From Paramoeba atlantica (lineage: Eukaryota > Protista > Discosea): DNA of 64,000 nt. Of the stretch, positions 14,218 through 62,149 are shown one piece after another (position 1 is the stretch's first letter; every line of letters begins with the position of its first letter). The position numbers were made by a program, and so were the translations under genes. The notes below the pieces were generated by a model that did not search any database, was not told the DNA's origin, and saw only the letters and a list, made by a program, of their open reading frames with translations. The stretch is from NCBI GenBank assembly GCA_977017575.1, contig CDRNVI010000178.1, positions 129,755-193,754 on the forward strand, read 5' to 3'.

Positions 14218-14234
14218 CATTGATTTTGCTTCTT

Positions 14235-30149: not shown

Positions 30150-31494
30150 AAAGAAAGAGATTAAAAATGAATGTTTTGCTCTGTCAATCAATTACTTATG
30201 ATTTTTTCTTTTCTTCTTCATGGACATTATTGCCAAAAAACCCTTTTCCTCTCTCAACATTATTGTTACTTCCTGTTTGTCTTTCAGAACCATCATATGA
30301 GAATAGTTTCTACTCTCCTCCTTCACTTTTATTATTTGATCATTTTCATTTTCAGACTATAAGAGAATTTGTAAAAACAAATAAGAGCTTAGTGTCTTGG
30401 AAAGTGGTTCATATGGACTCTCAAAACCAATAGATTATTCAAAACCAAGATGATCATATTATTCTAACAAGAAAACTGGAGAGAAAGCACTGTTGTTGAT
30501 GAGAACTTATTTTGAAACCAAATCAGTGGAGCCAGTTCCAGTTCTTTTTAAATTTTTTGAAGTTCCAAAACAAAATTCTCAAACAACAACAATTCTCTTT
30601 GATGATGTGAACAGGATTCCATTAGATCACCTCTCAGATTCAAGCTGGAAGGCTCATTTTCTTGGTGCCACTAAAGATTTTTATCAAAAATTGGCAAATC
30701 TAAGTTGTAATACCCAACAAAACCTTTTGAAAGATGAGAATTTATTGAAGAAATTGACCAGAAATGTTTATTTTAAATTGGAGAATGGCTTGAAGGATAT
30801 GTTTTGGTTGGAATTAGTTGAATCTCCTGAAGAGGTATATGAACTCTCAATTCTTCAATGTTTTATATTTATTCTATTATTATATTATCAAACAAAGAGA
30901 AATTATCAAGGATGGTGTTTGTTAATGATGGAAATTCATGTAAAGCAAGCAAATCCAATTCAGGAATATGTTCAAGCAAGTCAAACAAATGATATGATTA
31001 TTTCATTTGTGGAATCTTTTTTTAGAGGATATGTGATCTTTGAGTTATATTTCAAAAAATGAATTTCTTCAACAATCAAAGAGATATCTTCATCTTCCCC
31101 ACCTCCATCAATATTTGATAAACAGAGAGAATGCATTGAAGACATTTACAAAAAGTTTAATGTAACTGGACAGCAAATAACTCTTTCAACACAGATTTTC
31201 CGCTTGATTGAAGAATTTTGGCTCTTAATTGCTTGTGGGATAGTTTTTCATCATCACAAAAAAGACATTGGGCTTTCTTTTCTCTTTTATTTAGGATTTG
31301 GATGGGAAAATACACCTAGTTTTGGACTTACTGAGTTGGGTTACATTTGAAAACACAGTTTTGACTTTGTTGCTGGTATTCGAGCAGCAATATATTATTA
31401 TATGTCTTTGAAAAATGAAAATAGATTTTGAATTATGGGTGCTGGGTTTGTGAATTCAATATCTAAAAAAAAAAAAATAAAATTACCACCTTAA
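30150..31494 (+). pseudogene. TET-1: putative TET/JBP-like 2OG-Fe(II) dioxygenase pseudogene
   Basis: Reading through TGA at 31060, 31348 and 31429 gives ...IACGIVFHHHKKDIGLSFLFYLGFGWENTPSFGLTELGYI*KHSFDFVAGIRAAIYYYMSLKNENRF*IMGAGFVN, colinear with TET-2. The 5' end is uncertain. Confidence 0.55.
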
Positions 31495-31559
31495 CAACCA
31501 TCAAAAAGTTGCTTACAACACCTTTAAATACTAGATTGTTACCAAAAAAAATAGACCTA

Positions 31560-33230
31560 AACTTTATTTTTTCAATTTATATTTTTTCAAAAATTGGATG
31601 TAGTGTACAGGTCCTGATGATCATCAATATATGTGGGTTTGTATGTTTTTTGGTCCAAAAGGAGCTCCAACTCATTTCCAGAAAATTATAGATCAAGTGG
31701 TTGTTGCTTTAATTGAATTTGTTCAAATGTATGTTGACAATCTTTTGATTCATTTGAAAACTTTGAGTGAATATATTGATCACTTGAAGTTGGTTATTCC
31801 TACTCTGATGAAAGCTGGCCTCTAACTCAATTTGAAGAAATGCAAGTTTGGGTACAAAAGAATCCAATTTATGGGGTTTATTATTGATGCACAGAAAAAC
31901 TATCCAACATTAAAGCAAGAATTATTGGCAATCTTACTGGCTTTGAAGAGGTGGAATTATGTGTTATATGGACAAAAATTTGTTATGGAAACAGACCACC
32001 AAGCACTAACTTACTTAAACAAGAGTGAAAGTTATATGGTAAGAGATTGACTCTACTATTTTCTTGGGTATGATTTTATGATCAAATATAAAAAGGGAAT
32101 TGAACATATTCTTCCAGACATGCTTTCTTGGTTGATCACACTACCTGAAGATGGAAGTATGGTTGGAGAACTTTCAGACTTAAAGATTGATGATGCAATT
32201 CAAAAAAGTTTTTAGAATCAAGTCCAAGGGATGATTGTTGAACTAATGGAGAAATTTGAACTTCCAAATGATCAGAAAGAAGAAGTCATCAAGAAGATCC
32301 ACATAGAAAGTTATATTGGTCCAATAGGGTTATGCATTCTTACCTTTCAAAAGGGTTATTATTGGAGAGGTATGAAAAAATTGTGTGTGAAGATTGCTCA
32401 AGGTTGTCAAGAGTATCTGTTTTTTAATGTGGGAAGGAGTGGATTTCATCTAATTTCTGCAGTTCTGGCACTCTTACCTTTTAATTATATTGCTTTTGAT
32501 TTTATTGGCTTATTCTCAGAAACAGCTGAAGGTTATAAGTATGTGCTGATTATTGTGGATGTAGTGACTTAATTCATCATTTTGAGATCTCTGAAGATGA
32601 AATCATCAAAAGAGGTTGTTGGGGTGAGACCTGCTTCCAACACAGAAGTTGTGCCTTTCAGTGTCTTTTCAGTTCCTTGAGCCTCCCTGAGCCTTCCCTG
32701 AGCTTCCTTGATGCCTTTTATCATGAGTTTTAGTCTTTTTGGAGAGCCCTGAGCCTCACAAACAGCCACGCGCCATTTTATCGTGATTTTAGCTAAAATC
32801 ACAAGATTTTTAGCCAAATCTCTTGTTTTCTCTGTTGATCCTGCTCCCCTCCTCACAAGGTAGCTTGAGTTTTGTTGAATGTCTTTGCAAACTTTGGAGT
32901 TCTAAAGATGATCCAATATGATCAAGATTCATTTTTTATGAGCAGATTGATTTCTGATTTTCATGAAGCTGCTGAATTTCTTCCAAAAGCAATTTTGAAG
33001 TATTCTCCTTCAAAGAATGGTATAGCTGAAAGATTTGTGGATGAGGTAAAGATAATTATGAACAAATTGGGTAAGTAGCAGATGAGGGTTTCGATCCATT
33101 TTTCTTGAGAGTTTTCATTTTCACCTAGACACAAGCATTACATTTTTCGATCACCCATTCAATATCATTTAAGAAAACTTTTTGGATAGAATCACTCTCC
33201 ATGGCATATATCAGTTGATGAGGGTTAGCT
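31560..33230 (+). pseudogene. Degenerate Ty3/Gypsy pol with an internal RT-RNase H deletion, plus integrase
   Basis: FGPKGAPTHFQ, YVDN, KKCKF, NYPTLKQELLA, ETDHQAL, AFDFIG, QYDQDSFF, NGIAERFV. Related to 18-24.7 kb. Confidence 0.88.
32617..32857 (+). mobile_element. Internally deleted solo LTR of the chromovirus family
   Basis: Both LTR termini intact with ~385 bp missing. 4-bp TSD AGGT (32613-32616 / 32858-32861). Confidence 0.92.
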
Positions 33231-33258
33231 AAACCTAAGGAACAATGCAGATTTATAA

Positions 33259-34110
33259 TTGAAGAAAATCAAGAAGAGTGACATTACAGAATTTTTGTAT
33301 AGTGCTAACATATCAATATTTGATTGGTTAAAAAATAAATTGAACTTTTTTTCATTTTGTTCTCTGTTTTTGATTCTGGCAATGAAAGGGAATGAGAAAC
33401 TGCCAAAACAAACACCAAAAGAACCTCCAATCTCATTAGATGAAATTATAGAAATTGATTTCATTACTGAGAAAATTCAACAAACAAAAAAGAGGAAACA
33501 AAAAACTGTTAAGAAGTGAAGAAAATGCCAAAAAAGAGGAGTGGAAAAAACACAGCAGCTGTTGCTGATGGAGACCATTCCTGTTGATGAAGAGAGTTTT
33601 AATTTGAATGAAACAAAGTGATGGGTGAACTCTATGATTCTTCTTGAATTTGAAAAGCAACTTGATTTTGCCTTGAAAAAACAAATTTGATTTTTTCGAA
33701 TTTAGCTACCATTGCCAAAACAAATTTTCTGTAAGATTTTTTGGGAACCATTGAAAAAATTTGAAAAAGTGAAGTTTCAAGTTGATAAATCAAGACAATG
33801 TGCTCGAATCTATTCTCAAGACAATTTAAAAAAACTGGATTCTTGCTTTTTGAACTATTTTGAATGGCAAACCAAAAAGATTTTCTTGCAAAGTTCTTGC
33901 AGCAATATTTTTTTAAATGAGGAGGTAAATATTGTTCTTTATCATTGGATTGAATTTGATGTTATTCAAACTGATAAAAATTGAATAATCAAGTGTGAAT
34001 CTGAGTTGATTTTAAAATTTACAAAAAAAAAAAGTCAATTTGAATGCTGTGGAATCATTGAAGTTACAAATGCATCTGGCTTTTGTTGCACTTGAAAGAA
34101 ATTATTTGTT
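33259..34110 (+). pseudogene. ORF-Y: orphan decayed ORF, function unknown
   Basis: ORFs 33259-33519 and 33712-33984 share a frame and are joined by a few TGA/TAG stops. No motif recognised. Confidence 0.4.
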
Positions 34111-35208
34111 GAATTATTTTGAAACAAAATTAAATTTATTTTACAAAAAAATCTTGAAAAAAATGAAACTATTTTTTAGATTTATTTCCATTATTAGTAA
34201 AATGTTAAAAAAAAAAGAGGAAAAAATTTAATTAGTAAATGAAAAAATTAACTTTTTCAGTTTGTCAAGTTTTTGCTGCATTTGCCTTTGATGTAAAAGA
34301 ATTTGATTCATCTGAATTTTGAAAAAAATGGATTAATAAAAAATATTAATTGAAAAAAAGAAATATTCAAATCCAAAAAAAAAAAAATACTTGGGTTTGT
34401 GAGGATGTGTTATTACCACACATTGTTGATAGTTGGGGATTTTAAAGTGGTTGTAGGTTTGCTACTGCTGTTGATTGATATATTGGTTGTTGAGCCAATC
34501 CATAAATTTGTGAATTGCCATTTTATTGAAATTGGATTTGAGGTGAAGGATTAAAATTTTGTTGGAATTGTTGGGGTGATTTGTTGGGGTGAGACCTGCT
34601 TCCAACACGGAAGTTGTGCCTTTCAGTGCCTTTTCAGTTCCTTGAGCCTCCCTGAGCCTTCCCTGAGCTTCCTTGATGCCTTTTATCATGAGTTTTGGTC
34701 CTTTCGGAGAGCCCTGAGCCTCACAGACAGCCGCGCGCCATTTTATCGTGATTTTAGCCAAAATCACGAGATTTTTAGCGCTCTTTTTATTCAGTTTTCG
34801 CGTTCGCGTTTTTGCTTCTTTTTCTTGCCGCTTTGCCGCTTTCTGCTTTCTTTCTGCTTTCTTGTCGCTCTCTCTCTCTCTCTTTGCTTTCCTTTGTGAT
34901 CTTTTGGCTTGCCTTGCTTGCTTTCTGTTCTCTTCTTTTGTTGTCATCATCTTTTGTTGTTTTCTTCCTTCTTTGGTTGCTGTGTAGACTTGGGATTCCG
35001 ATTTGAGTTGAGTTTCGGTGATTCTGTGCTTTTCTCAGTTGTGATTCCTTTTGTTGTTCTTCTTCTTGCTTTTCTGTTTCTTTGTTGTTGTTTTCTTGTT
35101 CTGTTTGTGTTGGCTGGGGATCTTTCCCATAAAGGTTTTGATCCAGAGTTTCTGTTTCTCTTTCTTTTCTCTTGTTTTCTCTGTTGATCCTGCTCCCCTC
35201 CTCACACG

Positions 35209-35223
35209 TGGTGCTCCTGGTGA
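35209..35223 (+). promoter_or_regulatory. Primer-binding site, probably tRNA-Ile(UAU)
   Basis: tggtgctcctggtga, 2 bp after the LTR. It differs by one base from the complement of the eukaryotic tRNA-Ile(UAU) 3' end as recalled (TGGTGCTCCAGGTGA). Confidence 0.6.
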
Positions 35224-38200
35224 CTTCAGTGAGACTGATTGCGCTCCGATTTATCAAGGATTGTTTTTCTTGATCCTTCTCCTTCTAAAGCAGCTGTGCG
35301 TTTTTCGGGCCTTTCTCCCCATGTTTCTTTCGCGTTTTTGGACCTGGATTTTGTGGCGAAAATCGGTTTTTCGTTTCTCTTGATCTTTCTTTTGCTTTTT
35401 CTGCTCTCTTTTCTTTCGTTTTACGATTGAATTTGGTTGTTGGTGAATCCTGCCCATTTTCCCCGACCGATTTTGGATTATTAGCGAGAAAGTTCCAGTT
35501 TTTGTGATTTTTCCCTCCTTTTTTTTAAGGTGGTGACTTTCAAACCTCTTCTTTTGTGACTCCTTTTGTTTCATTTCATCCCTTTGTGACTCTTGAGGAT
35601 ATTTGAGACCCAAATAACCGGTTTGGAAACTTGTTTCTCTTTTCTTGGCTCTGTTTTGGTCAATTTTTGAGAAAAAGAACCCTGATTTGAAGCACTTGTG
35701 TTTTGGAATCGATTTTTGCACCGATTTTGCGCCCCATTCTCTTTCCTTGTTGATTCTCAAGGTTATTTAAAGCTTCAGACAAATTTTTGGAAATTTATCT
35801 TGATTTTTGACCTTGTTTTGTTGGAATTTCCGAAATTTTTCCTCTCTTTGGGCGAATTCTGTTCCAAGGCTGTTTTCTTGTTGGTTCTCCCTCTTTGTTT
35901 GTCTTTTATTGATTCTCAAGGTGATTCAAAGCTTTTGACGAATTTTTAGAATTCAATTCCCTCTTTCGACCTTGTTTCGGTGGAATCTCTGAAAAAAGAA
36001 AAATACTCTTAATTGAAACAATTGAGCTTCAAAGTTGTTTTCTTTTGATTTTGCTTTTCGACCTTGCTTTTTGACGATTACTAGAACAATTCAAAGTCCC
36101 CTGCGAATTTTCAGAATTTGATTCTCTCTCTAAACCTTGTTTTGAATTGGATTCCCCTTTTGACCTTGTTTTTGCAGAATTTGCAAAAAGACTTATTTGA
36201 ATCAATTGTGTTTCGGACATGTGTTCTCAACAGTCTTCTCTTCTATTTTGTTGTGGGCGATTCTTGAAGTGTTTGGAAGCTTTTGGTGACCTTTCAGAAA
36301 ATTTATTCCTCGTTTCGACCTTGTTCTGGCGGAATTTCTAAAAGATTTCTCTCTTTGAGTTCTTGTGTTTTGGAAGATTTCTCTCTTTGAGCCCTTTGTG
36401 TTTTGGAATTGTTTTTGGACAGTTTCTTTTCCCTTTCTTCTTTGTTGGCGACTCTTGAGGTGTTTGGGAGTTACCAAGTGGCTTTTCAGAAGGTTATCCC
36501 CTATTCTGATCTTGTTCCGGCGAAATTTTCAAAGAACCTCTGTTTTAGACAATTTGAGACAATTATATTTGGACTTGTTTTCTCCAGTGATTTCTTTCCC
36601 TTTATTTTGTCCCCTGGCAATCTCCAAGACATTTCGAACAATCCCTGTAATTTTTGGAAATTTATCCTCCTTTCTGGGCCTGTTCTCGTGGAAATTCGAA
36701 AACTTCCCCACAGTGATTGGATCTTGTTTTGAACTGTTCTTTTGAGTGGTTTTCTCTTCCCTTCTCTTGCTTTTCGACGATTCTAGTGGCAACCTAAGAC
36801 TCTTAATAATTTCTGAAGTTTTGTTCCCTTTTTGAAGTTGTTTGAGCAATATTTTGGAAACACCCCGTTTTGGCTGGTTCTGAGCGAGGTCATCCGGATC
36901 AGTTCTATTCTGTGGTTTTCTTTCCTCTTATTTTGTTCTTAGTTGATCTTTGAAACATCTTGAACAATCCCCATAATTTTTGGAAATTTACCCACTGTTT
37001 TGTGCCCTGTTTGCGGAATTTTTGAGAACCACACATTGACTGGATCGCCCTCTGAATTGCTCCGCTTAGTAGCTTTATTGTTTTTGTTTTGTTCTTTGAC
37101 GATTCTATTAGCATTAAAAGGTTTTCAACAAATTTGAGAAGTTTGTTCCCCTCTTTTGAGCCTGTTTGAGTGACACTCCAGAAATACCCTGTTTGGCCGA
37201 TTTTCAAGTTAATTAAATTTGAAGTCATTTCCTTTAGTGGTCTTTCAGTTCTCTGCTTATTCCTTTGGTGATTTGCAAAACATTGTTACTCCTTTTGACA
37301 ATTTCTTAAGAAATTACCCTCAATCTCAGTTCTGTTTTGGTGGTATTTCGGAAAGTTTTGTTTGTGTGACTGTGAGGATTCCTGATTTTTCTTTCGTGAC
37401 CCGCTGACTTTGAGTGTGTTCTCCCCTTCATCCTTGAGTTGAATTTGTGGACAACCTTCCTTGTAGAATTTTGTGGGACGGGAAAGACCTTTCTGAGATC
37501 ATATTCTTTCTGAATCATTTTTGAGCCAATCCTTGGATTCTCAAATATTTCATCTGATTTCCTGAGTTTGCAATCAAACCTTGCATTGTTTGAGTCAGTA
37601 TTGGCGACAAATCACTTCTAAATTTATTGAAGTTCTCTCTTGGATTGGACCTTCTTCAGAAACAATCCCTTTGTTGGTTATTCTGGACTCTCATTGTTCC
37701 GTGGGCTCCAAGTTTCGGATATTCTCTTGTATTTTCCACCAGAGTGACTCCCTGTTTTTGCATTTGGATTACTGAGTTCTTTTGTGGCCTTGTTTGCTCC
37801 TTACCCAAGCAAGACGACAAGACACCCCTCTCTTCTGAACTCTTTCCTGTTGTTTTAGAGTGGAAGTTTTGGAATTTCTCACTGTTTTTCGGCCCCGAAA
37901 CCTTACAGTTCCATCCTGCTTGGCAATTTTCGAGTTTCTGGCATCTTGTTCCCTTTTTTCTTTTGAATTGAGTGACAACATAAGACATTTTTGAATTATT
38001 GCTGTTGGATAATCATTTGTTTGCTGGGATTTTCTGGGATTATTTTTTTTCTTGATTCCTTTGATTCCTTCTGTGCTGTTTCCAGTCGCCGAACTTTCCT
38101 GTATTTCTCTGATTTGTTCATTATTGGAACTGTTTGTGACAAAGTCCTTTTGAACTCCTTCTGTTTTTTGGATTTTGCGGATTTTTGAGCATCCCAGAAG

Positions 38201-38363
38201 TCTAGTTCTCTTCAACCAGTATTCATTCCGGCGAAATCCCTTGAATCTTTGTGGTCCAATTCCTTTGCCTGGATTGAGGAATCAAATTTTCTGGAAATCT
38301 TCCTTGAAATTACCGGCTTATTGTGTGGAGAATCCTTTGTTTCGATTTCTTTCTTGAGTTACC

Positions 38364-41300
38364 TTGCCTGACTGGACCAACCTTGAATTATACACTGTAT
38401 TTTGTGACTCTGGGACATCTTGTTTTTCGTCCAGCCTGAATTGGATCTGTGACTTCTGTGACTTCTGTGACTTCTGTGACTTCTGTGACTTCTGTGACTT
38501 CCATGACTTCTGTGACTTCTGTGACTTCCGTGAGTTCTGTGACTTCTGTGACTTCCGTGAGTTCTGTGACTTCTGTGACTCCTGTGACTATACGCAACTA
38601 TTTCGTTTGTTTGGAATCTTGGATCATATTTTTTTTTCAGGAGATTATCATACGCCCTTATTGGTGAAAGGAAAATTGGGGAACAAAGAAGTGGTGTTTG
38701 CAATCGATTCTGGAGCGACAGTTGACTGCATTAGCGGTGATTTTTACCAGAAACATTTTAGTCACTTAACCTTAGAAAAAGCGAGACATTCGAGTTGATT
38801 TCTCTCTGCTGGTGGTGATGCTTTACAATGTTTGGGGAGAGTAGCCTTGCCAGTTGTTTTGGGATCTGTGAAGAGGAACATTTATTTCTCTGTCTTGAAC
38901 AATTTGACTTTGGATGTGATTTTGGGCCTGGGTTACCAAGTTGATGTGGGTTTGGATATTATGAACAGCCGTGGATTTGTGATTCCTCATGGTGGTATTC
39001 CTGTTCCCTTCTCTGTGAAAAAGAAAAAGGAAACTGTCATTGCAAGCGTGGTTCCCAATCCTCGACCTGTCGCTCTTCTTTACCCACAAGCTGTGAAAAT
39101 CCCACCCCGTTCAAGAAGAGTTGTGAAATTGAAAGTTTCTGAAAAAATGTCCAAAGATACAAATTACCAAGGCAAAAGTGATGGTTATGTCATGCCAGTC
39201 CATAGATATTGTCGAGATCTCGTACTCCAAGAGGGCCTAGTAAGAATGGAGGGTGGAGAATCTTATGTTGCCATTTCGAATCCTCGCTTTCGAGAAGTCC
39301 GATTGGACAATTCCAAGCCAATTGCTCGTGTTGTTTATTGTGAGAAAAGTGATTTTGACAACATTATAATTACTGAGATCCCAGACTCCAATCTTTTCCA
39401 AGAGCACACCCCCGAGTCCATTGATGATCCCAATGAGACTAGTCCCATTGATGATTTCAAGAATTTGAAGAGTGTACTGGTGGAAGATGATGATGATGAA
39501 ATGACTTTGGAAGATACCAATATTCTGAATGCAATTCTTGTCAAAAGAGCCACTGCTGCCAGAGATAGGAGTGACAAGGGTGTCACAAAGGAAGAATTGG
39601 AAGATTTTCATGCCGATTTTCCGAAGATCCTAAATGAATTCAAACTGGAGGGTTGTGTTTTGAAGCCTGACAAGTTGAAAAAGTTGATGCAAACCTTGAT
39701 GGACTATGAGGATGTTTGGACTAAACAAGAGAAACTCCAAAGAACAACCTTAGCCGAACACCCAATCGAGGTGGAACCTGGCACCCAACCAATCAGAGAA
39801 AGAGTGAGGAAGACGACTTTCGCTCAAGACCAATTGATTCATGGCCATATTTCGGATATGCACAAAAGAAATGTGATTGAACCCTCAAACTCTCCCTGGG
39901 CAGCCCCAATCCACTTGGTTGATAAGAAAGACGGAAAAATTCGATTTTGTATTGACTATCGATGCCTCAACAAAGTCACCAAGAAAGATGCCTATCCTTT
40001 GCCTAGTTTGAATGATATTTTGAACACCTTGGGGAATGCAAAATATTACTCAACTGTCGATCTGAGCTCTGCTTTCTGGTCCATTCCAATCAGTAAGGAA
40101 GATAGAGAGAAAACTGCTTTCATTTCGAAATATGGTCTTTGGCAGTGGATCAGTATGCCTTTTGGTTTGACTAATGCTCCTGCAACTCAACAAAGATTTA
40201 TTGAGAAAGTCTTGGATGGAATGCTTTGGGATTGTTGTATGGTTTATGTTGATGACATTGTTATTTTCTCCTAAACGGAAGAAAAGCACATCGAAAAATC
40301 AAACAATTGCTCCAGAGATTGCGAGATGCGGGCCTTACGGTGAATACTAAGAAATGTTCATTTGCTCAACCTGAATTCGAGATTCTCGGACACATCTGTT
40401 CTGGTGATGGTGTTTCTCCAAATCCTAAGAAGGTGTCTGCAATTCTTGATTACCCAATGCCAGAGGATCGACCTGCCTTGCACCGATTTTTGGGACTCGT
40501 TACCTGGGTTGCAAAATTTATTCAGAATACTTCATCAAAAACAATTAATCTCCAGAAGTTGTTGCATGAGAAAGAGCCTTTCAAGATGGAAGAAGATCAC
40601 ATTGAGGAATTTGAATCTATCAAGAAAGCTTTGGCAGAACCTCCCATGTTGGCTTACCCTGAATTTGAGAAACCTTTCCATGTTCATGTTGATGCCAGCA
40701 AGAACGGTTTGGGCGCAATCCTTACTCAGTTGGATGAAAATGAGCGTCACAGAGTGATTGCCTTTGCAAGTGCTCTCCTCAAAGTTGCACAGAAGAAGAC
40801 GACAGCTTCTGTTTTGGAATGTATTGGTGTTGTTTGGGCTGTTACTTATTTCAGACAGTATGTCCATGGGCGCTCTTTCTATGTGTATACAGACCATTTG
40901 GCTTTGGTGACAACATTTAAGACTCCTTCAACAAGTCAGACACTTGACAAATTAGCCACTCGCCTGTTGGGTTATGATATGCACATTATGTATGCTCCTG
41001 GAAGTAAAATGACCAGTCCTGATGCATTGAGTCAAGCCAAGTATGTGAAATATGAAGGTGATCCTCCTGAATATTGTGGGAAGATTGGTGATTTGCCTCT
41101 TCAATTTCCAGACCAAGGAACTGATGTGGATGAACGAGTTGGTAACCTCAGAGGAAAACTGAACCGTACAGTTAACTCTATTGTGGAAAATCAGCCAATA
41201 ATGGGATATGATTTGGTGGTGAGAACTTCAAGTGATGGAAGTTGTACAGAGTGGATATTTGAACCTGTCTCAGAGAAGAAAAGTGGTATGATGGTGAATG

Positions 41301-50099: not shown

Positions 50100-50615
50100 T
50101 GGGAAAGCAAAAATACTTTTTTTTTATTTCAACACTTCAAAAAGTTCAATTTGAAAAACTTTTTGAATTTTTTTATTGTTGAAAAATTTTAAAAAGAAGT
50201 AGTGGTTAAATATTTCAAATGAATTAAACTCCCTCTGAAAAGGATTTTTTAGTTTTATTGAAGGTTTAAAACTTTTTCTACAAAAACTTTTTTTTTTGTG
50301 GGGAAGTAAAAATACTCTTTTTTCATTTCAATACCTCAAAAAGTTCAATTTGAAGAATTTTTTGAATTTTTTTATTGTTGAAAAATTTTAGAAAGAAGTA
50401 GTAGCTAAATATTTCAAATGAATTAAACTTCCTCTAAAAAAGATTTTTTAGTTTTATTGAAGGTTTAAAACTTTTTCCACAAAAACTTTTTTTTTTGTAG
50501 GGAAGCAAAAATACTCTTTTTTTATTTCAACACTTCAAAAAGTTTAATTTGAGGAACTTTTTGAATTTTTTTGTTGTTGAAAAATTTTAGAAAGGAGTGG
50601 TGGCTAAATATCTCA
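50094..50615. repeat. AT-rich tandem array of ~200-bp units (~2.5 copies)
   Basis: Unit anchor gggaagYaaaaatac recurs at ~50101, 50301 and 50500. About 1.6 inverted units occur at 12430-12760. Confidence 0.9.
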
Positions 50616-50619
50616 AATA

Positions 50620-51834
50620 CAATTTGTGGGGCAGGCAGGCAAGGCAAAAAACTTGAAGAGTTTGAGAAAAATGGGCCACTTTCAAAACGCTCGTGAGATT
50701 TTACAAGAATTGAACATTTCTTGGAAAACTTATCAAAGCAAATCCAATCAAAAATTTGGGATTTAAAAATTGAGGGAAGTGAAGGAAACCATGGTGTTTT
50801 TGAGTTTGAAGGAAGTGGGGTTTGTTTTTGAAGCTGTCTTCTTGCACCTGATCACATGATTGCATGTTGAATGCATTCTACTTGGATCATTACTTCCAGG
50901 AGATTCCTTTCGAAGCTCAAAGAAAGGTCTTCACCTCCTTTGATTTTGCTTTTTTGACAAAAGAATTGAGAGTTAAATAATAAATGGGATCAGAAAGGTT
51001 GGTTTTGAATCTATCCAGAATTGAATGATAGACCCAAAATTTTGGAACAACTTTCAGATCAATCAGGTGGGTTTTTAAAGCACTTGAATTTATTGGTTGA
51101 GGAAAACTTTTTAAATGTCATTTCTGGGGATTTATACATTTCATCTCAGAGTGGTCATAATGACACATTTTTTTTATTCCCAGGTAGCTTCAGAAGAGGA
51201 GATTTACAAAATGTCAATTTTTCAATCTTTGCTTCTCTCTTTGAACCCCCTTCTGCCAAAATGTAAGCAGAATGCTCAGGGGTGGAACCTCATAGCTCTT
51301 GGACTTCACAAAATTCAAAACTCTTTAATGAAATGGGTTCAAACTCAACATCTAACAGATGACATGAAGAAAATTCTTTTGTCCCTTTTAATTGTATATG
51401 AGATAAGAGAGTATTGCTTGATGAAGTGGATAATTGGATTAAAAAAGAATTCAAACTTTTTTGCAGAACAAATTGGGATGTATGAGAAATTTCAAACAGC
51501 TTGGAAGGAAACAGGAAAAGATATGAGAGTTCAACTTCCAATGAAATGTACTCAACAAATTTGGATTGGAGGAGGCTGTGGAACCCTCCTCCACAAAGAT
51601 GCTTCAAACTTCGGTTTGTCATTTTACCAATATTTGGGTTTCAATTGGGGGGAAAGTGATTGTGGTGTTGGTCTCCCCAAACTTTGAATCCTTTGGAAAA
51701 ATTCACCAGAATCTGCAATGGCTATTTGTGCTTGTTGTTACTTTTACATGAGTTTGCCACTTGATTTAGGGTTGAAAATGATAGGTGTGACTTTTGTTAA
51801 TCATAAAAAAAAATCAAATCCTCTGAAAAACTAA
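50620..51834 (+). pseudogene. TET-2: putative TET/JBP-like 2OG-Fe(II) dioxygenase pseudogene
   Basis: ...QQIWIGGGCGTLLHKDASNFGLSFYQYLGFNWGESDCGVGLPKL*ILWKNSPESAMAICACCYFYMSLPLDLGLKMIGVTFVN, with HxD at 51592-51600. Several TGA stops and a frameshift in the T-run near 51170. Confidence 0.62.
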
Positions 51835-51911
51835 ATAAAAGGAAAGCAACACACAAACCAAAGCCCTCAAAAAAATTGGTTAAAGTGAAATTGATAAAAA
51901 ACTTGTAAATT

Positions 51912-53800
51912 TTATTTCTCATCACCATCTTTTTTCAAAGAAATTTCAGTTTTGAGATTGTACATTCATGTGAGGAAAAGGTCTTCCTGAGCAGCTCAAA
52001 TCAATTTTGGGTTTGTCACCACTTCACTTCTTTGATTTAAATTTGTTTGGGTTGCTCGAATTTCTTGTGGGATATCCAAAGAGGTTTGATATTGATTTGC
52101 TAAAGAATGGCTGTATCAAAAACAAAATCCAGTTGTGAGAACTTTAGTGTTCAGATTTGCAGAACCTTGTTGGCTACTCCAATAGAAGTGCATACAATCC
52201 AAGTAGTGGACCTGCTCCCCAGCTTCTGCTACCCAAGGTTGCAAATTCCCAAACTGATAATACGTATCTGTTGCATGAGCTTCCAGAATGTGGAAATAAA
52301 TTCACCAGGTGGAACCCATCTCCCCTCCCCAATCTATGAAGCTTTCCTTCCAAGAACCAATTTTTTTTTCAAAATTAATAGTGATTACTTCATGATTTGA
52401 CCCTTTTGAAGGGTCACTTGTCAGCATTTGAAAACATTCTCAAAAAATAACCCACAATGATGTTGTGGATGGTCAATTTGGATTGCAATAAAAGATTCTT
52501 TTGACATTTTCCAATACTTGCTGCATTTGAGTGCCCATGTATTGCCCCAATTTCCAATTTCCATCATCACCAACTTAGAATTGAAAAGAAATTTTGCATT
52601 TAGAAAACACAAAAACCAGCAACTTCAATGATTTGGTTTTCAATGAGTAATTCTTCTCAAATTGTTCTTTTGTGGAGCTTTTCTCATATTTTTCCTCCAG
52701 ACAAGATTTCAACAAAAGGAAAAAGGAAGGTGAAGAAGAAGAAGATGAAAAGGAAGAGGAAGAGGAAGAGGAAGAAAATGAAGATGAGGAGGATAAGAAA
52801 GATGAAGGTGAGTTCAACAATGAGGATGAAGGTGAGTTCAACAATGAGAATGAACATGAAGAGAAATCTTGAAAGTCAGCCCACCACTTTGCCATTAAAT
52901 CAATTCTCAAGATTAAATGAACTGAGTTCTTTGGTATCTTTTACTTACAAAAGTTTGATTTCCATTTGTCCTGCAATGACTCACTGTTCAATCCTTCCAA
53001 CCATTTTTCCTCTTCTTGAAATTGTATATTCTCATTAGAATATTGATAAAAAAGCAAGAAATTAAGTTCATCATGGCATTTCTGTTGAGACCTCCCCCAA
53101 CCCCAATCTGAAAGTGTACTTTTTCTGGCATCCACTTATTTTCCTTCAATTCATTTTGAATTTGAGTTTTGGCAAATTCATCAAGAACAGTTTCAACAAT
53201 ATTCATTGCAGTCTCAAATTTTGTTTCAAAAAAGCTTCACTTTAAAATGACATAATTTATCCACAATTCAAGAAATTTCATTCCATCAAATGTTTCATGG
53301 TCACAAAAAGCTTTCATCATATTTAGCAACCATTTTTATCCATTCAAGGTTTGAGGTGGGTTTGGAGGCAATTGATTCTTTTTGCTTATATTTTGTCCAC
53401 TTTCCAAAAATCTTTGCTCTTCTTCCAAATACCTTCCAAAATATCAATTTTCAGCTTCAAATTCAAAGAGAAAATCCTTCAAAAACAAAATTGACTCTTT
53501 GTTTTCAGTGATTGCAAGTAGTTCACACTGTTTTTCTTCTTCTGACAACATCCCAGGAAGAGAATATATCTTTTTTTTGTTTTCAATTTCAATATTTAAT
53601 AAACAAATTCATTCTTTCAATGGAGATGAGTAACTGCCACTTTGAGATCACAAATTTTTAAGAGTCAATTGAACTTGAATGTTGAGCTTCTGATAAACAA
53701 GATGACAAGCAGTTTTGTGAAAGTTTTGAATTGCCTCAATCTTCCCCTTAACTTGGAAAAAATGAGATGAAAAGGTATTTGCTGGGTTCTTGGGGAAACC
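51912..53800 (-). pseudogene. DDE transposase of the RAG1/Transib/Chapaev type (N-terminus continues at 61631-61810)
   Basis: ETFDGMK (~53285), HFQIGVGGGL, VHLILRI, CKISFQF, YFHILEAH (H-x4-H, ~52275-52298), WVAEAGEQVH. Stops and at least one frameshift. Confidence 0.65.
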
Positions 53801-54327
53801 TGTTAGAATATCAGTATTCTTGGTTTGAAGAATGTTTGACTTAATGGAGAACATCATTTGTGAATTCTATGATCACGAGTTATGCTATCCTGAAGCGCCT
53901 CATCTTCCTCTTTCGAATGGTGCTAGTCCCATCTGAATCTGACAACTACACACCGAGATATTGATCAATCATTGAATTGTGCCTTCAAAAATACCTTTGC
54001 CCTATTTCAGACCCAATTTGATTGCATAGTTTATTCTCCATATTCTGATCTTTCAGCCTGTGAATTTATTTGTGCTGACGTCATCTGTTGTTCCCTTCCT
54101 TAAACTTGTTGTGTCTTTGTGTCTCTTATGTGTGCTTTTATTTGTGTGTGTTTCTCTGTTTTTGCACTTGGTGTCACATTGTTAAATATGTGCTTGAAAC
54201 CTGTTCATAAATAAACACATGAGAGACTTTGTTTTTTTCACGTTTCTGGCTCTCACCATGGAATGAAGTTTGCACCTTTCTTTTCTTTTCTCAGCAATCT
54301 TCTTCCACCAAACCCCACCACTTGACA

Positions 54328-54339
54328 GATTAAGAGTCT
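54328..54339 (+). promoter_or_regulatory. PBS complementary to the tRNA-Lys(CUU) anticodon arm (half-tRNA priming)
   Basis: GATTAAGAGTCT directly after the LTR; its complement AGACTCTTAATC is the Lys-CUU anticodon stem-loop. Confidence 0.7.
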
Positions 54340-55334
54340 AGGCTCTCTGCCTGATCTTGTCATCAGTAGAACTTCAGTGTTTTACACCTTTTTTTGTTTT
54401 ATTTTTTGTTTTATTTTTGTTTTATTTTCTGTTTTTTTGTTTTTTGTTTTTGTTTTTGTTTTCACTCATTCGCACCTGTTCTCTCATTCGTTCAACAACT
54501 TCACTCAATTTCTTTTTATTGCTCTTGCTCTCTTGTTCCTTTTGCCTGTCTTTCTGTTTGTTTTAATTATGTGTTTTCACAATTTTGTGTGGTTTTCGCA
54601 GTTTTTCTTGCTCATCTCCTCCTGTTGCTGTTTCTTGCCTTTCTCTCTCACTCTCTTACATTCGCCACATCCTCAACTATGGAAGATGATTACAGAGTAG
54701 TAGATTGGCCAGAGTTTGAACCAAAGAACAAGACATGGAAGGGTGCACTTGAGATTAATAAACTCAAAGGTGAATCCACCATTGAATTCATGCTCTGGTG
54801 AAAAGAGATGCTCATTCGGCTCAGCACCCAAAATCTCATTCATCATCTATTCCTCAATAAAGTTCCTACAGGTGAACCTGTTCTAGTCAAGTTTGAGGAG
54901 GAGCTGGAGGAGGTTACAGAAAAAATGGAAGAAGCTGAGAAGAAAAGAATTTTGGCAGAAAGAAAGGAGTTGGAGGCAAGACACAAAGAGAAATTGGAGT
55001 ATAAGCAGCAAATTAACCAAAGACGTTTTGATGACCATATGGACAATCAAATGAATCTTACAAACTTACTGAATAAGGTGTGTGTTGGTCGAGCAAAGGG
55101 GTATCTCAGTGATTTGAAGAGAAGAACACCAAAAATTATTTGGGACACATTGATCTTAAATCTGAGTACTGTAATTGTTCACAATGTAAAGGAAGTGAAA
55201 AGTAAGTTAGAGGATTGTTGTATCAGAGAAAATGAGACAATCTCTAGTTTTGAGTTGAGACTGAAGGAGTTATTTCTTCACGTTGAAGCGTTGAAAGGGA
55301 AACTGATACCAATGAACAAGAAATTGGGTTACAT

Positions 55335-56521
55335 AGCTTGTGGATCACTGTATGTGCAGAAGGATCGAAGTCCCCAAGCTTTGCTGTTAAAATTTTTGAT
55401 GAAATTGCTAAGACAAACAAGATGATCCCCAAACAAACTATAAGAAAGGCTCCCCCCAAAGGTAAAAGAGAAGTGAAACAACCAAAGTTCAAGTACCCTG
55501 CCTTGCAAGTGTTTTATGATGGCTCTGGGCATGTAGACCCCCACATCGGGGGAGCTGGGTATGTGATTATTAAGGAAGGTTTGGAGGTTAGAGGTGGATT
55601 TGAAACAATCCCACTAGGCTCAAATAACTTGGGTGAGTTTTTGGGATGCTTAGCTGGTCTACAACAAGTTATTGGCTTTGGGCAACGCGTAGAGATGGTG
55701 GGAGATTGTAAAATTCTGACTGAGGCAGCACCTAAGACAAAACCAATTGATAACTTTGAGCTCAATGAGATCCTATCTGAGATCAGAAATATTGCTGAGA
55801 GTAAATTTACCAAAGTGGAGTACACTTATGTGTATCACGAATTCAACAAGAGGTCAGATGCGATTGCAACGGCAGCAAGTCACTCTGAAGAGAATGGGAT
55901 GGAAGCTGTGTTTGATAGGAACTGGGATCCAAGATTGAAACAACTAGCAACAACCAGTGAGGAATGGATTATTGAGAATTCCAAGCTGTGGAAGTGGGTG
56001 ATGGAACCGTTGGATTTGGATTGGAGCTTCCCTGTGAAGAAAGTTCAGTTTAAGAGGAGGTTTAAGGACAAGGTGATTACAACTAATAATGTTTACTTCC
56101 CAGTACAAGCTGCACTGGATGGGGTGATGATTTCTCCTGTGTTCATTTCAGATGATATTGTCAAGTGGTTTCCAGAAAGAGCTGCACCTGGAGAGATGTT
56201 AGAAAGTTTTGTTGAAAAAGAAAACCGGAAATGGAGAGAGGAGTATGAGCAAGCAAGGAACCGTTGGTTGAAGAGTGCAATGAGACCTTCCATTGTAAGG
56301 AAGATTATTAGGCCTATTAAGGTTGTTGAGAAGAAAAGAATTTTGAAAGAGATTCGAATGAGAAATAGAAAGAAACATTAGAGCTTTTGGCCACTAAGTT
56401 AGCACTGAAGTGGGTTGATCCTACTTGATTATAACAATTTAATTTAAGTGTATTCTTGGGTGTCCAGATTACACTTCATTTCAATAAATGGCATCTCTGA
56501 TGTCTAAAATTAAAAAAAAAA
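55335..56521 (+). mobile_element. 5'-truncated L1-like copy with archaeal-type RNase H, nested in Copia gag
   Basis: Open ORF 55338-56381 and poly(A). 17-bp TSD aagaaattgggttacat (55318-55334 / 56522-56538). Confidence 0.94.
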
Positions 56522-59500
56522 AAGAAATTGGGTTACATTCGAGATTCCATGCCGCAACAATGTTGGGAAACCTTTCGAGGATTGCTTAGAGTGGGAGAGT
56601 GGACAGTGGAGAGTGCTTTCTTAGAGTTAAAAGAAATCAAAGGTAGTCACTCCAGTGCCAACAAGAAAAACAAGCCTTGAAGACCAAGGAGAACACCGCT
56701 GCTTATGTTGCTTTTCGGAAGAAGAATAACCCTGCTGCCAATCCTAATCAACAAGGAAATGTTGCCCCTCCTCGCCAAGGAAGACAAGGAAATGGCCCTC
56801 CTCACCATAGTCCTCTAATTCCTTCTCCTCAAACATGCAACCAATTTCAAAATTACCCTGGATGGGAAGATCCTCCCACCCCTCCAGCTAAAGCCTGTTT
56901 TCGTTGTAGTGCCACCAGTCACATTGTGAAAGGTTGCAACACAAACCCAGCAAACCAAAGTGTTGTGGGATAACAAGCCAAGGTGAATTTCGATGCTTTT
57001 GTTCAAAAGATCAACACTTGGAAGATGAAAATGAATAAAATCAATATTCCTGTTTACTCCTGTTGTGTTTCTGCTCTCATTTCTTCTTCTCAATCTTCGA
57101 TTCAATCTGCTTTTGTTGCAAAACAATCAAATGGAGCAACTGCTCTTGCTGATTCAGCTTGTTCAAATACAATTGCGAATGATCCAAATCTTACAACAAA
57201 AAACGCTCCACCCGCAATGACCATAAGCATCAAGCAAGTGAATGGTGATCTGATTCCTGTTACAATGCAAGGTGACTTGGCAATTCATTCTGATTTGCCG
57301 CCTCTTCAAGACGTCTCTGTAGTCCCCAATTGTGAAATGAATCTTCTCTCTGTGGCTCACATGTGTGAAACTTGGGATGCTTCTGTTGTTTTGGATTCTG
57401 ACCAAATTTGTGTGATGAAAAAGAAGATCAATTTGAGTGATTCCCAGACGATTTTGAGTGGTCCACAGAACAATGGCTTGTATTATTTGGCTTTACCCAG
57501 TCGAACCAACCATCAACAATCTTATATTGCTGAAGAAGTTACTCACCCAAAAAATGAAACCCCTGAGGATGCTTCTTCATCTCAACCTCTCCACAAGAAA
57601 AGAATCTGTAGAACCCTCTGTCCGACCCATGAGAAAGAATGGAAATATTGGCATAATAGACTGTGTCATTTTTCTGGTTTGAAGAGGACTATTAATGCTC
57701 ATGCGGTTGATGGTTTGCCCCTGCAATATCACAGATTGAGAATGGATCAAAATGTTTGTACTGCTTGTGAGTTGGCCAAAGCGAAAAAGAAGAGTCATAC
57801 CCCTGGTACGAGAACAAAATGAAAACTCAGTGAAATGTTGCACATTGACAACCATGAAAAAAATATACTTTCTTATCAGAAGAACAAATACTCTCTCTCA
57901 GTTGTTGAAGACTACTCCAAGATGGATTTATCTGAATTCCTCAAGAAAAAGAGTGATGCTGGCGAAGTGCTGATCAATCTGATTGCAAAGCTTCAAAGAC
58001 AATTGGATGTGAAGGTCAAAATCATTCAATGTGATGGTGCTTGAGAATTTGTCGGTCCTGCAACGAAAATTGGACAATATTGCGCTGAAAAAGGAATTCA
58101 TATCAGATTTTCTAGTAGAGATGATTCTGCTGAAAATAGTGTTGCTGAATGTGCAAATGAGACTCAATGGAACACTGCTCAAGCAATTCGAATCCATGCT
58201 GGATTGCCTGAACAATTTTGGGATTATGCTGAAAAACTTGCAAGTGTTGTAAGCTCCTACATTGTGAAAGAAAAGGTGAAGAGATTTCCCCCTTCCAGAA
58301 GCTGTATGGTTGCAAACCCAATATTGAGTTGATCCGCCCTTTTGATTGTCATGCTTTTGCACACATTCCCCAAAAGAACAGAACCAAACTGATGCCTAAA
58401 GCGTGCCCTGTGATCTATCTTGGCCCCTCAGAAAAAATTAATGGTTATATTTTGTATGACCCTGTAAAGAAAACTATTTTTGAAAGTTCAAGTATAGTAT
58501 TTGATGAATATGTCTTTGGTGTTTTGAACCTGTTGAAGCATATTGATAGAGGGAATATCCCACACTATTTTGACACTTATTTGAATGAAAAATTCATTGA
58601 TTTTTCAAAATTATCAGACTGTGACGACGTTCTGAGTACGAACACAAATCCTGTAGATTGTGTACATGAGAATCCTGATGATTCTGCCAAAATTGTAATT
58701 GATGATGATTACCCTGTTGATGTTGAATGGGAGAACAGAATAGGCCATTCCACTCCTGCTCCTGTAAACTTACATTCAAAACATACTGCTTTGAATGAGA
58801 AAACCCACAGTACAGATGTGTACAGTGATGATGATGATGATGAGATGGTGCTTCTCAGTATGCCTCCTCCCGATTTTACTCAGAGCGATGGTTCTTACAC
58901 ACCTACATCTTCCTCTTGTTCCTCTTGCTCCTCTTATAGTTCCTCTTCTTCTCCAATTGTTGATTCTGCTCAAGCTGCTGCAGCCCCTGATTCTGAAATT
59001 CTCTCTCAAATGACAGAATTAGATATGAAGGATGAAGAAAGTGAAGGAACTGATTATGACTCTGCTGATGAAAATGAATCTGAATTGCCAATTGACCTCG
59101 ATAATTATGAAATGTTCAATTACCCACCAGATGATCATGATCCTGACCCTTATGACCCTGCAGACCAATCTGCATCTCCTTACTCTTCCTCTACATACAA
59201 CTCTGAAACTGATCCTGAAGTTGATTTCAATCTTGTTACTCAATTTCAACCTGATGATGAAATTAACATCTCTGAACCAAATGAATCTGATGATGCAGCT
59301 GAAGAAGTAAGACACTCTGCTCACTTCCAAGACCCTGACTACCAACATAGCGCCATTGGAAAAGCGTTCAGTGCCCTGAAAATACCTTGGAATACATTTG
59401 GTGAACCTGGCCATGGTTACAAAGATCTTAATTTCTTTGACTATGCCTTCCATGCTGACCAAATTGTTAATAACAAAGTTACCCCTCGATCCTACAAGCA

Positions 59501-61630
59501 AGCTGCTCGTTCAAATGAAAAAGAAGAATGGAAACAAGCCTGCAAAAGAGAATATGATGCTCATATTGAAAATAAAACTTGGGAATTGGTGCCTCCTCCC
59601 CTAAAGTTCCCCAAGGATGGAAAGAAACACATTATTATGCAAGGCCTGTGGCGATTTCGAATTAAGACTGAAAATGGTGTAATATCCAAGTTCAAAGCTC
59701 AATTTTGTGCAAATGGTTCTTGTGTAAAACATAATCTTGCGAAAGATCCCAATTTTGACCAAGAAGATAATTATGCTGGAACTGCAACCACTGAATCTCT
59801 CAATTTGACATTTGCTATTACCACTATGTTTGACCTTGATGTGAATTCTGGAGATGTTCCAAGTGCCTATATCCAAGCTGACATTCCTGATGGTGATATC
59901 GTTTATTATGTCACTCAACCCAAAGGTTTTGAAGATCCTGAACATCCTGAATATCTCTGTTGATTGAACAAAGCTCTCTATGGTGTGCCAATTGCTGGAC
60001 AATGTTGGAATCTGACTTTTTGAAAATTTCTTATTGAAGAGCTGCAATTCCATTGTCTGACTGCTGATCCCAATCTCTACATTCGTATTGAACCTGATGG
60101 AAACTTCTGTTTATTCCCAACTGTTGTTGATGATAATTTGGATGTTTGTACTTGTCCAAAGCTCCGTGAAGAGATTTACTCCAAACTGATTGAAAGATTC
60201 AAGTGGAAGCCTAGTGGAAAATGCTCCTGGTTCCTTGGTTGTGGTGTGAAACAAAATCACAAAGAAATTTCTCTCAATCAGTGTGCCTTCCTCAACAATT
60301 TATTGGAGAGTTTTGACTGCCACAAAATAAGAAAGAGTGATACTCCTGCTGTGAGTAAAGTTCTGCCTATGCCTAAGCCTGACAAACCTTCTACTGATTT
60401 TCCCTATGCAAGTCTTGTTGGTTCTCTAATTTGGTTGATGAAAACTCACCCTGATATTTCATATGCTGTTTCCCAATGCTCTCGCTTCTTGAACACCCAC
60501 ACTGAAGATTATGACAAAGCTGCTCTGCGAATTCTCGGTTATCTTGCCAAATATCCTGATTATGAATTGGTGTTTCCCAAATCCAAATCTGAGACTAAAG
60601 AACTTGTGATTTCTGCCCAAGCTAACTCAAGCCATCAAGATGTTACAGAAGACAGATCCTCATCTTACAGTTTTGCTATTTTTGCAAATGGTTCCCCCAT
60701 TTCCTGGTGTTCCAAGAAATCTCCTCAAGTTTGTTGGTTCAGTTGTGAATCTGAATACCATGCCCTTGCTGAAGCATCCCGTGAATTGAAATTTGTTGAT
60801 AACATTCTCTCTGAGTTGTGCATCCCGTACAAAAGACCTTTCTTGCTCCAATCTGATTCTGAACCTGCGATGGCTATTGCAAAGATTCCCTGTGTAAACC
60901 AAAGAACTAAGCAAATTGAAGCTTTTGATCATTACACAAGAAAAGCATTGGAAGATGGCCTGATTGAGTTGGATTATGTGCCCACTAAAGATAACCTTGC
61001 CGATATTTTTACAAAACCCCTTGGACCCAATGTGTTTACACCTTACCGGAATAATCTTATTCATCCCTGTTGCTCTGTGAATTAACTTCATGATGAAAGG
61101 GAGTGTTAGAATATCAGTATTCTTGGTTTGAAGAATGTTTGACTTAATGGAGAACATCATTTGTGAATTCTATGATCACGAGTTATGCTATCCTGAAGCA
61201 CCTCATCTTCCTCTTTCGAATGGTGCTAGTTCCATCTGAATCTGACAACTACACACCGAGATATTGATCAATCATTGAATTGTGCCTTCAAAAATACCTT
61301 TGCCCTATTTCAGACCCAATTTGATTGCATAGTTTATTCTCCATATTCTAATCTTTCAGCCTGTGAATTTATTTGTGCTGACGTCATCTGTTGTTCCCTT
61401 CCTTAAACTTGTTGTGTCTTTGTGTCTCTTATGTGTGCTTTTATTTGTGTGTGTTTCTCTGTTTTTGCACTTGATGTTACATTGTTAAATATGTGCTTGA
61501 AACCTGTTCGTAAATAAACACGTGAGAGACTTTGTTTTTTTCACGTTTCCAGCTCTTGCCATGGAATGAAGTTTGCACCTTTCTTTTCTTTTCTCAGCAA
61601 TCTTCTTCCACCAAACCCCGCCACTTGACA

Positions 61631-61810
61631 AAACCTAATGTTAAAGAAACACAAAACAAGTTTCTTTCAAGGGTTTTGATCATTTGTTCCTGCTCCACTT
61701 TTTCAACTGATCCTTGGTTTTCACTTTTTCATTTTTGTTTTTGACTTTTTTCTTCCTTCTTGAAATGAATATGACTATTCTCATCTTGAGCAAACTCAAA
61801 AATTAAATTG
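61631..61810 (-). pseudogene. N-terminal piece of the transposase-like ORF split by the Copia
   Basis: Joining across the AAACC TSD reads in frame: ...RNLFCVSLTLGF|PKNPANTF... Confidence 0.6.
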
Positions 61811-62149
61811 TTCATCTTCACTTTCTCAACAAATCAAAAACAAAACCAATGCCACAAAAGAAGGAGAAAGGTTCCACTTTTTGCTTGTTTAAAATTAAAT
61901 TGTTCTCTGAAGTTTGTATTTAAAAAAGCACTTTTTTAAAAGTCATACATTTAATTTTTTATGTACTTTAAAGGATCAAATGTCTTTTTGATTTCAAGGT
62001 TTTTTTTCAAACTTTTCTCCTGTATTTAGAAATAAAAACCCCTTTTTCTTTTAAATTAAAACAAAACCAATCAAATATTGATACATTGGTACCATACAAA
62101 AATTCTATAATGAGGGTGAGAGTAAGAGGTGAAAAGCCAAGAGGAAGAA

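Follow-up and report, generated by a model that had tools for sequence, protein, structure and literature searches.

A terminal-inverted-repeat transposon with a RAG1/Transib-like transposase gene and a probable TET/JBP-like cargo gene in Paramoeba atlantica

We analysed a stretch of 64,000 nucleotides from Paramoeba atlantica (GenBank assembly GCA_977017575.1, contig CDRNVI010000178.1, positions 129,755 to 193,754), here called the window, which is part of contig C178 in a 45.7-Mb assembly. Positions 33282-62112 of the window are one old copy of a DNA transposon bounded by terminal inverted repeats (TIRs), split by four nested insertions. Taken as a whole, we judge it probable that this is a RAG1/Transib-like element of the EnSpm/CACTA-Mirage-Chapaev-Transib (CMCT) clade, present as a non-autonomous short-form copy, and that it carries a probable TET/JBP-like cargo gene. 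A first-pass annotation of the bare sequence had proposed a mobile unit coupling TET/JBP-like dioxygenases to a RAG1/Transib/Chapaev-type transposase, and a mobile unit it is, bounded by TIRs and present in several copies. The copy in the window is well delimited, but non-autonomous and locally wrecked. Its parts are the following, in window coordinates.

33282-33329, + strand: left 48-bp TIR, starting CATTAC; homology ends sharply here in six copies, with the right end as its reverse complement
33283-33981, + strand: gene D (ORF-Y; ORF, open reading frame), a small basic orphan in two pieces of ~112 and ~120 residues; tblastn of the C209 copy, 82-90% identity
34388-34579, - strand: C-terminal end of gene C (ORF-X), severed by the Gypsy insertion; tblastn of residues 623-686
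34582-45275, unstranded: Gypsy long terminal repeat insertion, foreign to the element; flanks adjacent in C209, C155, C140 and C154
45275-46051, - strand: middle, low-complexity part of gene C; tblastn of residues 365-623, 89% identity
46052-47129, + strand: fragment of a long interspersed nuclear element (LINE) with an RNase H (RVT_3) domain, foreign to the element; Pfam RVT_3 E 2.4e-13, flanks adjacent elsewhere
47131-48237, - strand: N-terminal globular part of gene C; tblastn of residues 1-369, 82% identity
48345-50093, - strand: recombinase (Crypton-like) cassette, foreign to the element; absent from the C209, C155 and C140 copies
50094-50618, unstranded: array of 2.6 tandem units of 199 bp, located upstream of TET-2; Tandem Repeats Finder
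50852-51831, + strand: TET-2-like gene, frameshifted and decayed, with an intact ORF of 337 residues in C209 and C155; tblastn in three frames, 80-89% identity
51999-53803, - strand: gene A remnant, residues 60-653 of the short form, with the H(4)H-E motif and a deletion junction near 53172; tblastn
53802-61630, + strand: Copia insertion inside gene A, foreign to the element; flanks adjacent in all other copies
61624-61815, - strand: N-terminal 64 residues of gene A; tblastn, 83% identity
62065-62112, - strand: right 48-bp TIR, ending GTAATG; end of homology and reverse complement of the left end

The termini, which the first-pass annotation could not find, are located by aligning the copies. 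The TIRs are perfect 48-bp inverted repeats (5'-CATTAC...GTAATG-3', with CA...TG ends) in all six full copies, and homology between copies stops sharply on both sides, at the TIRs. A 34-nt TIR pattern has 15 matches in the genome, namely six pairs and three single ends, versus 0 for the reversed control; the assembly thus holds about six full copies, and copies with a single end are found in C206 and C218. With blastn, the window segments 33281-34581, 45276-46051, 47130-48344, 50083-53802 and 61631-62115 follow one another directly in C209, C155, C140 and C154, and the same segments are joined in part in a second C140 copy (C140b), C153 and C203. Without the insertions, at least five other copies in the genome have the backbone in one continuous piece. 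It had been put at 9-10 kb, but the unit is 7.26 kb (7,264 bp in C209 and C155). These two are the youngest copies, 99.7% identical to each other with unrelated flanks. The gene order ORF-Y(+), ORF-X(-), 199-bp array, TET-2(+), transposase(-) holds as first described. In C209 and C155 the unit encodes a gene A of 653 codons, the TET-2-like ORF convergent with it, a gene C of 691 residues and a gene D of ~230 residues; the Pfam search assigns no family to any of the four. The central part had been noticed to recur at 12-15.5 kb, and there is indeed a partial copy in that place:

12054-15537, unstranded: fragmentary second copy of the element centre (5' end of TET-2, array, N-terminus of gene C); blastn and tblastn

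All four insertions that the first-pass annotation excised (~34582-45275, 46052-47129, 48345-50099 and 53802-61630) are true insertions, with flanks that are contiguous in other copies. At the LINE fragment, the flanks in other copies adjoin with an overlap of ~16 bp. The Crypton-like cassette has a weak Pfam match to Phage_integrase (E 0.028).

The flanks of the copies follow the pattern A-element-A(G/A)(G/A). A paralogue of the C140b insertion site lies in the window near 9345, and it differs in length by one base from the joined flanks. This agrees with the duplication of a single A at integration, or with no duplication at all, as judged from few copies. The sixth full copy (C154) abuts a 5'-truncated short interspersed nuclear element (SINE). 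A search of the genome for the empty site with the C209 flanks returns only the flanks themselves.

Gene A is supported as a transposase of the RAG1/Transib/Chapaev type. It has the motif YFH-x4-H-x13-WA-x-E-x2-E, whose spacing is that of H937, H942 and E962 of RAG1 (H(4)H-x20-E) in the alignment, and its C-terminal 200 residues have metagenome homologues at 38-48% identity. When the family profile is compared with the PDB, the top 15 matches are all RAG1 chains (E 0.008-0.19), aligned over the same three RAG1 residues, and the Atlas (protein-language-model) neighbours of the transposase include RAG1_ZnH2 clusters. The AlphaFold model of one homologue, P0012, has a mean confidence (predicted local distance difference test, pLDDT) of 63 and is good over residues 111-230 and 300-450, with the RNase H and ZnC2 parts at low confidence. 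Foldseek with this model ranks RAG1 in the top 12 places and HzTransib at 14, 17 and 27 (E 0.8-3), while VIA-align gives its longest alignments, of 121-126 residues at Z 6.2, to HzTransib and to BbRAGL, the amphioxus RAG1-like protein. The Pfam RAG1 models do not match the transposase.

The upstream half of the catalytic layout is found outside the short form. The longer homologues (P0012, P0014, P0018 and the ORFs in loci L049 and L050) have WKLH[AT]DG, then CGD-x19-CxxC, then FCTLHC, with CP[CY]C intact in P0012, P0014 and the L050 ORF; the short gene A has none of these motifs. A genome search with these homologues brings up the second C140 copy (C140 69084-77277), in which 1.5 kb is present that the short form does not have, and in this long copy a protein of ~1,165 residues with the layout D...D...C(2)C...H(4)H...E can be followed in one frame, interrupted by ~20 decay stops (WKLHLD ... 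CGD-x19-(Y)PCC ... YFHILEAH ... WAAEAGE). Most of gene C is lost from it. All other copies, the window's included, have in common a net in-frame deletion of 1,527 bp (509 codons), by which the two catalytic Asp residues and the C(2)C are lost, with its junction in the window near 53172. The ancestral element was ~8.8 kb long, with a transposase of ~1,165 residues and a CMCT-type layout. Since the D, D and C(2)C are lost, the short-form copies, including the window's and all the young ones, are non-autonomous. The RAG1/Transib/Chapaev-type assignment of the first-pass annotation stands in the layout and in RAG1 as the best profile and fold match, but the window copy encodes no working enzyme, because it derives from an internally deleted form, has decayed further and is split by Copia.

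The short gene A of C209 and C155 has two in-frame stops, a TAA and a TGA, of which the TGA is common to all copies. The TAA of the young copies is a true nonsense change, because older copies read GAA or AAA at that place. Both stops lie in GT(A/G)AG-like sequence, and introns were considered as their cause; these were rejected, as there is no acceptor that preserves the frame, the TAA corresponds to GAA or AAA in older copies, and the long copy and the homologues read through in one frame. The idea that gene C supplies the N-terminal half that the transposase lacks was also rejected, as there is no similarity.

The TET-2-like cargo gene, at L007:1354-2364 on the - strand in the C209 copy, has a paralogue (35% identical, with a protein of 364 residues) that lies outside the element in the window:

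30457-31549, + strand: TET-1-like gene, in another repeat family; tblastn of the intact C177 copy, 79% identity

In TET/JBP dioxygenases the iron triad is HxD...H, usually spaced by ~50 residues, and a basic residue further downstream serves for 2-oxoglutarate. In both TET-like subfamilies G-T-x-L-H-x-D, G-L-S, Y-L-G-F-x-W and LH[KRH]D ... Y[FY]HM ... [KR]-[MI]MGA[SG]F are invariant. The distal His stands 50 residues past the HxD and an R/K stands ten residues further, and this spacing matches that of JBP1 and NgTet1; the R/K would be the 2-oxoglutarate-binding residue. The first-pass annotation had found the distal His missing, and so it is in the decayed window copies, but the intact copies have it. 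Among the Atlas neighbours of the TET-2-like protein, 70 of the 100 nearest clusters are Tet_JBP (score 0.96); its Atlas recognition value is 2037, below the level of most proteins of known families. The Tet_JBP Pfam model finds four canonical genes in this genome, and aligned with hhalign to these canonical domains, the TET-like proteins have HKD/HTD and FH/FH in register (P 0.05). From these motifs, neighbours and weak in-register alignment, on which the identity of TET-2 has to rest because the Pfam and PDB searches and the folding failed, we take the protein with some confidence to be a very divergent TET/JBP-type 2-oxoglutarate/Fe(II) dioxygenase. The hallmark motifs of the proposed TET/JBP cargo are therefore there, but a match to PF12851 is not: the intact TET-2-like and TET-1-like proteins have none at E<=1, and the C-terminal domain has none at E<=10.

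The remaining genes of the unit are orphans. Gene C, intact in C209 and C155 with its 691 residues, has weak Atlas leads only. The 199-bp array varies in copy number: the window has 2.6 units, C209 has ~2 and C154 has more than these. Each unit of the C209 copy holds a 17-nt inverted repeat. As to relatives that might pair the two main genes, the metagenomic transposase relatives in loci L048-L052 have no TET-like neighbour. In L047, a related element from an ENA assembly, a long transposase of the same family lies beside a divergent ORF, cut off by the contig edge after ...AYHRDPND, a pairing that is suggestive only with regard to TET-like cargo.

The copies have decayed in a strongly biased manner. 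Between C209 and the window copy, 402 of the 422 substitutions are C>T or G>A toward the window copy, and the same bias is seen in reads from other samples. The decay amounts to 50% per position at CpG and to 8-10% at other cytosines in every context, about five-fold less. The observed/expected ratio of CpG is 0.70 in the young C209 copy, 0.08 in the window copy and 0.03-0.08 across old copies. The strong CpG decay first noted is thus borne out, with cytosines outside CpG also hit.

Several results weigh against the reading of this element as a CMCT transposon with a dioxygenase cargo. On the side of the transposase, the assembly holds no intact autonomous copy, the structural matches to RAG1/Transib are individually non-significant (the Foldseek E values above, and a VIA Z of 6.2 that does not clearly rise above background), and a profile of the C(2)C region has no match in the PDB. 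No matching flanks of >=2 bp are found in the five informative copies, where CMCT elements have duplications of 2-5 bp. On the side of the cargo, neither the TET-like proteins nor their C-terminal domain find any sequence match in Pfam, PHROGs or the PDB, even at lax thresholds, the hhalign probability against canonical Tet_JBP is only 1%, and the AlphaFold model of the TET-like protein, made from a six-row alignment, is mostly helical and unusable (pLDDT 36). Word-based homologue searches with the TET-2-like protein, the TET-1-like protein and the L047 neighbour ORF give near-identical proteins or nothing, two metagenome scans with the TET alignments give nothing, and TET-like homologues outside this organism or sample are absent from these searches. 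None of the RNA runs holds the element, and contigs matched to it yield nothing on splicing or expression apart from one perfect contig of 178 nt in gene C, from a run merely guessed to be RNA. Finally, a C5-DNA methyltransferase (PF00145) has no match in the 45.7 Mb even at E<=10, in an exon-by-exon search that can miss genes.

The blank profile searches, the helical model, the hhalign probability and the low Atlas recognition value would all be expected if the element were CMCT/RAG1-like and TET-2 were a non-dioxygenase orphan, such as a DNA-binding factor for the array, with a coincidental HxD...H. We find this rather unlikely, given that neither the motif residues nor their spacing differ between subfamilies as distant as TET-1 and TET-2, and that most of the nearest language-model clusters are Tet_JBP. 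Equally undetectable TETs of the PE type, recognised by structure alone, are also on record in transposons (Kojima 2025, PMC12730594). A different arrangement, in which TET-1, ORF-Y, ORF-X, array, TET-2 and transposase form one mobile unit of 9-10 kb with two dioxygenases, was the one first proposed for this locus. TET-1 is indeed paralogous to TET-2 and only 1.7 kb from the element in the window. Yet the left TIR at 33282 lies to the right of TET-1, no other copy of the element has an adjoining TET-1, and TET-1-like genes occur at other loci without the element, in a separate repeat family found on C177, C149, C143 and C207; we hold the two-dioxygenase unit to be very improbable, and TET-1 is no member of the transposon.

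A further alternative concerns the substrate. The dioxygenase may act on thymine, as JBP does in making 5-hydroxymethyluracil, or on some other base rather than on 5-methylcytosine (5mC), and the cargo would then have a purpose other than escape from silencing by cytosine methylation. The absence of a PF00145 match weakens 5mC as the substrate, and one canonical Tet_JBP gene type in this genome is fused to an SNF2 helicase, which is the architecture of JBP2. On the other hand, CpG mutates about five times faster than other cytosines, and a fall of the observed/expected ratio from 0.70 to 0.03-0.08 is what 5mC usually leaves behind; a methyltransferase gene can also have escaped the search, which was run exon by exon. 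We regard a substrate other than 5mC as unlikely. A bolder version of the dioxygenase-cargo reading is that the element represents a separate non-fungal CMCT lineage, nearer to Transib/RAG1 than the described TET-bearing elements, with insertion that dispenses with the usual staggered cut and gives a 0-1 bp duplication at A/AGG-like sites, and with an orphan dioxygenase targeted by the array to its own DNA, that is, a self-targeted modification eraser, possibly in a genome without a canonical C5-methyltransferase. This we consider doubtful. What we describe is a new family within an already published kind, the TET-bearing transposons of the CMCT clade, and its oddities are the absent target duplication, the orphan cargo and the undetected methyltransferase.

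For a RAG1/Transib-like transposon with dioxygenase cargo, a plausible course of events can be proposed. Since C209 and C155 are near-identical and there is no intact autonomous copy, we infer that a full-length element, of which the assembly has no intact copy any more, mobilised the short-form copies in trans. The cargo would consist of three accessory genes, of which the one beside the palindrome-bearing 199-bp array is most likely a TET/JBP-type dioxygenase. In the DNA of the element itself, this enzyme would oxidise a modified base, either 5mC or, like JBP, thymine. By analogy with fungal TET-bearing transposons and with PAG3 of the red-algal Plavaka elements, such oxidation may counteract silencing, which would give the cargo an anti-silencing role.

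Transposons that carry their own DNA-demodifying enzyme represent a direct counter-move to genome defence, and this family probably adds an example outside fungi. It has usable traits, such as clear termini, nearly intact young copies and a natural deletion series of long and short forms, and these make it a tractable case in which to ask what such a cargo oxidises and whether the neighbouring array recruits it. Standard annotation fails to pick up the cargo protein, so far has it diverged. For the spread of RAG1/Transib-like cores among protists, the spacing of the Zn and Glu motifs, like that of RAG1, is a data point. A separate puzzle is the extreme C-to-T decay in a genome where no C5-methyltransferase is detected.

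We also made observations on neighbouring loci. Of the canonical Tet_JBP genes, those on C39 and C40 (L003, L004) have the domain and an SNF2-type helicase fused within a single long open frame, a JBP2-like architecture, and a second pair (C3, C30) is without helicase; the near-identity within each pair points to haplotigs or to a duplication of recent date. At 279917-281770 of C177 (L040:1917-3770, - strand), immediately upstream of the TET-1-like gene that is intact there, lie ORFs of 301 and 316 residues with one stop between them, and their motifs YHCHFLPIGDL, PLHGK and SCQSGELRN recall the same transposase type. In an hhalign comparison with the transposase, this pair gives two short segments in the expected order that are non-significant (E 0.08 and 0.32). 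The TET-1-like genes may therefore be carried by another, older element that also belongs to the CMCT clade. C177 also has a decayed piggyBac-like transposase remnant at ~283000-284500 (- strand), whose motif is DE-x-L-x-P-x-KGR ... KPH-x-x-GIK. On ENA ERZ24900291 ctg3419c (L045), from another assembly, the element is present twice, 7.7 kb apart and 98-100% identical to C209, and GGAGAG adjoins the first copy at its right end. The C209 copy is ~9 kb from a chromosome end, and both C209 and C153 start with arrays of ~740-800 bp of CCCTAAA, the Arabidopsis-type telomere repeat. In the window, 21511-21935 and also 5665-6061 and 14235-14901 are occupied by a SINE of ~420 bp. Its 5' head is tRNA-like, it has a poly(A) tail, and its target duplications measure roughly 15 bp. 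It has many copies in C154, C140, C209 and C153, with repeated insertions into transposon copies; a 5'-truncated copy of it is the one that adjoins the left TIR of the C154 element.

The first-pass annotation knew of no association of TET with a RAG/Chapaev-type enzyme, but such associations are already published for fungi (Kojima 2025, PMC12730594) and for red-algal Plavaka (10.1101/2025.02.11.637652). The fungal study describes TET-bearing transposons of eleven lineages, including EnSpm, Plavaka and ESTA of the CMCT clade, with ESTA RAG1-like by HHpred, and with some cargo TETs (PE type) undetectable by sequence profiles and recognisable by structure only; for the link between Plavaka and TET/JBP, it cites earlier work on basidiomycetes as the first. 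It defines CMCT elements by the layout D...D...C(2)C...H(4)H...E, 5'-CA...TG-3' termini and duplications of 2-5 bp. The long C140 copy and the homologues have this layout, and the window copy is without the D, D and C(2)C. The fungal CMCT elements share with ours a TET/JBP cargo inside the TIRs and extra accessory ORFs. They differ in having target duplications of 2-5 bp (TA for ESTA), where we see none; our element also differs from the fungal ones in a TET-like protein without a detectable relative and in a host with CCCTAAA telomeres, which speak against its being one of those fungi. Plavaka termini are CATCA...TGATG or TGT...ACA with duplications of 2-3 bp (PMC12730594), and CATCA...TGATG of PlavakaB and CATTAC...GTAATG here are alike in the first three bases only. 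Kyakuja-Dileera-Zisupton elements are also DNA transposons with TET/JBP cargo, but their transposase family is unrelated and their target duplications are of 7-8 bp (PMC12730594).

The Plavaka elements of the red alga Bostrychia (preprint 10.1101/2025.02.11.637652) have a CACTA/Plavaka-type transposase and accessory genes PAG1-3, of which one is a putative 2-oxoglutarate oxygenase beside tandem arrays with inverted repeats. Compared by description, our element closely resembles them in layout, in its three accessory genes and in a TET-2-like gene beside a 199-bp array with 17-nt inverted repeats. The red-algal elements are 17-19 kb long, versus 7,264 bp here, and the ParB-like N-terminal domain of PAG3 and the adenine-methylase and SET domains of PAG2 are not detected here by Pfam.

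The transposase itself compares best with Transib, RAG1 and ProtoRAG. Our element lacks a 5-bp duplication and has TIRs that do not start with CACWRTG, whereas Transib and RAG1 have a 5-bp target duplication and TIRs beginning with the CACWRTG heptamer. Its transposase also has a long coiled-coil N-terminus and a low-complexity insert, and we see no RAG2-like partner. The best matches in the profile and fold searches are to RAG1, HzTransib and BbRAGL, at weak statistical levels, and the likeness to the group lies in an identical H-x4-H-x20-E spacing with WA-x-E-x2-E, and in the D-x19-CxxC after the second Asp.

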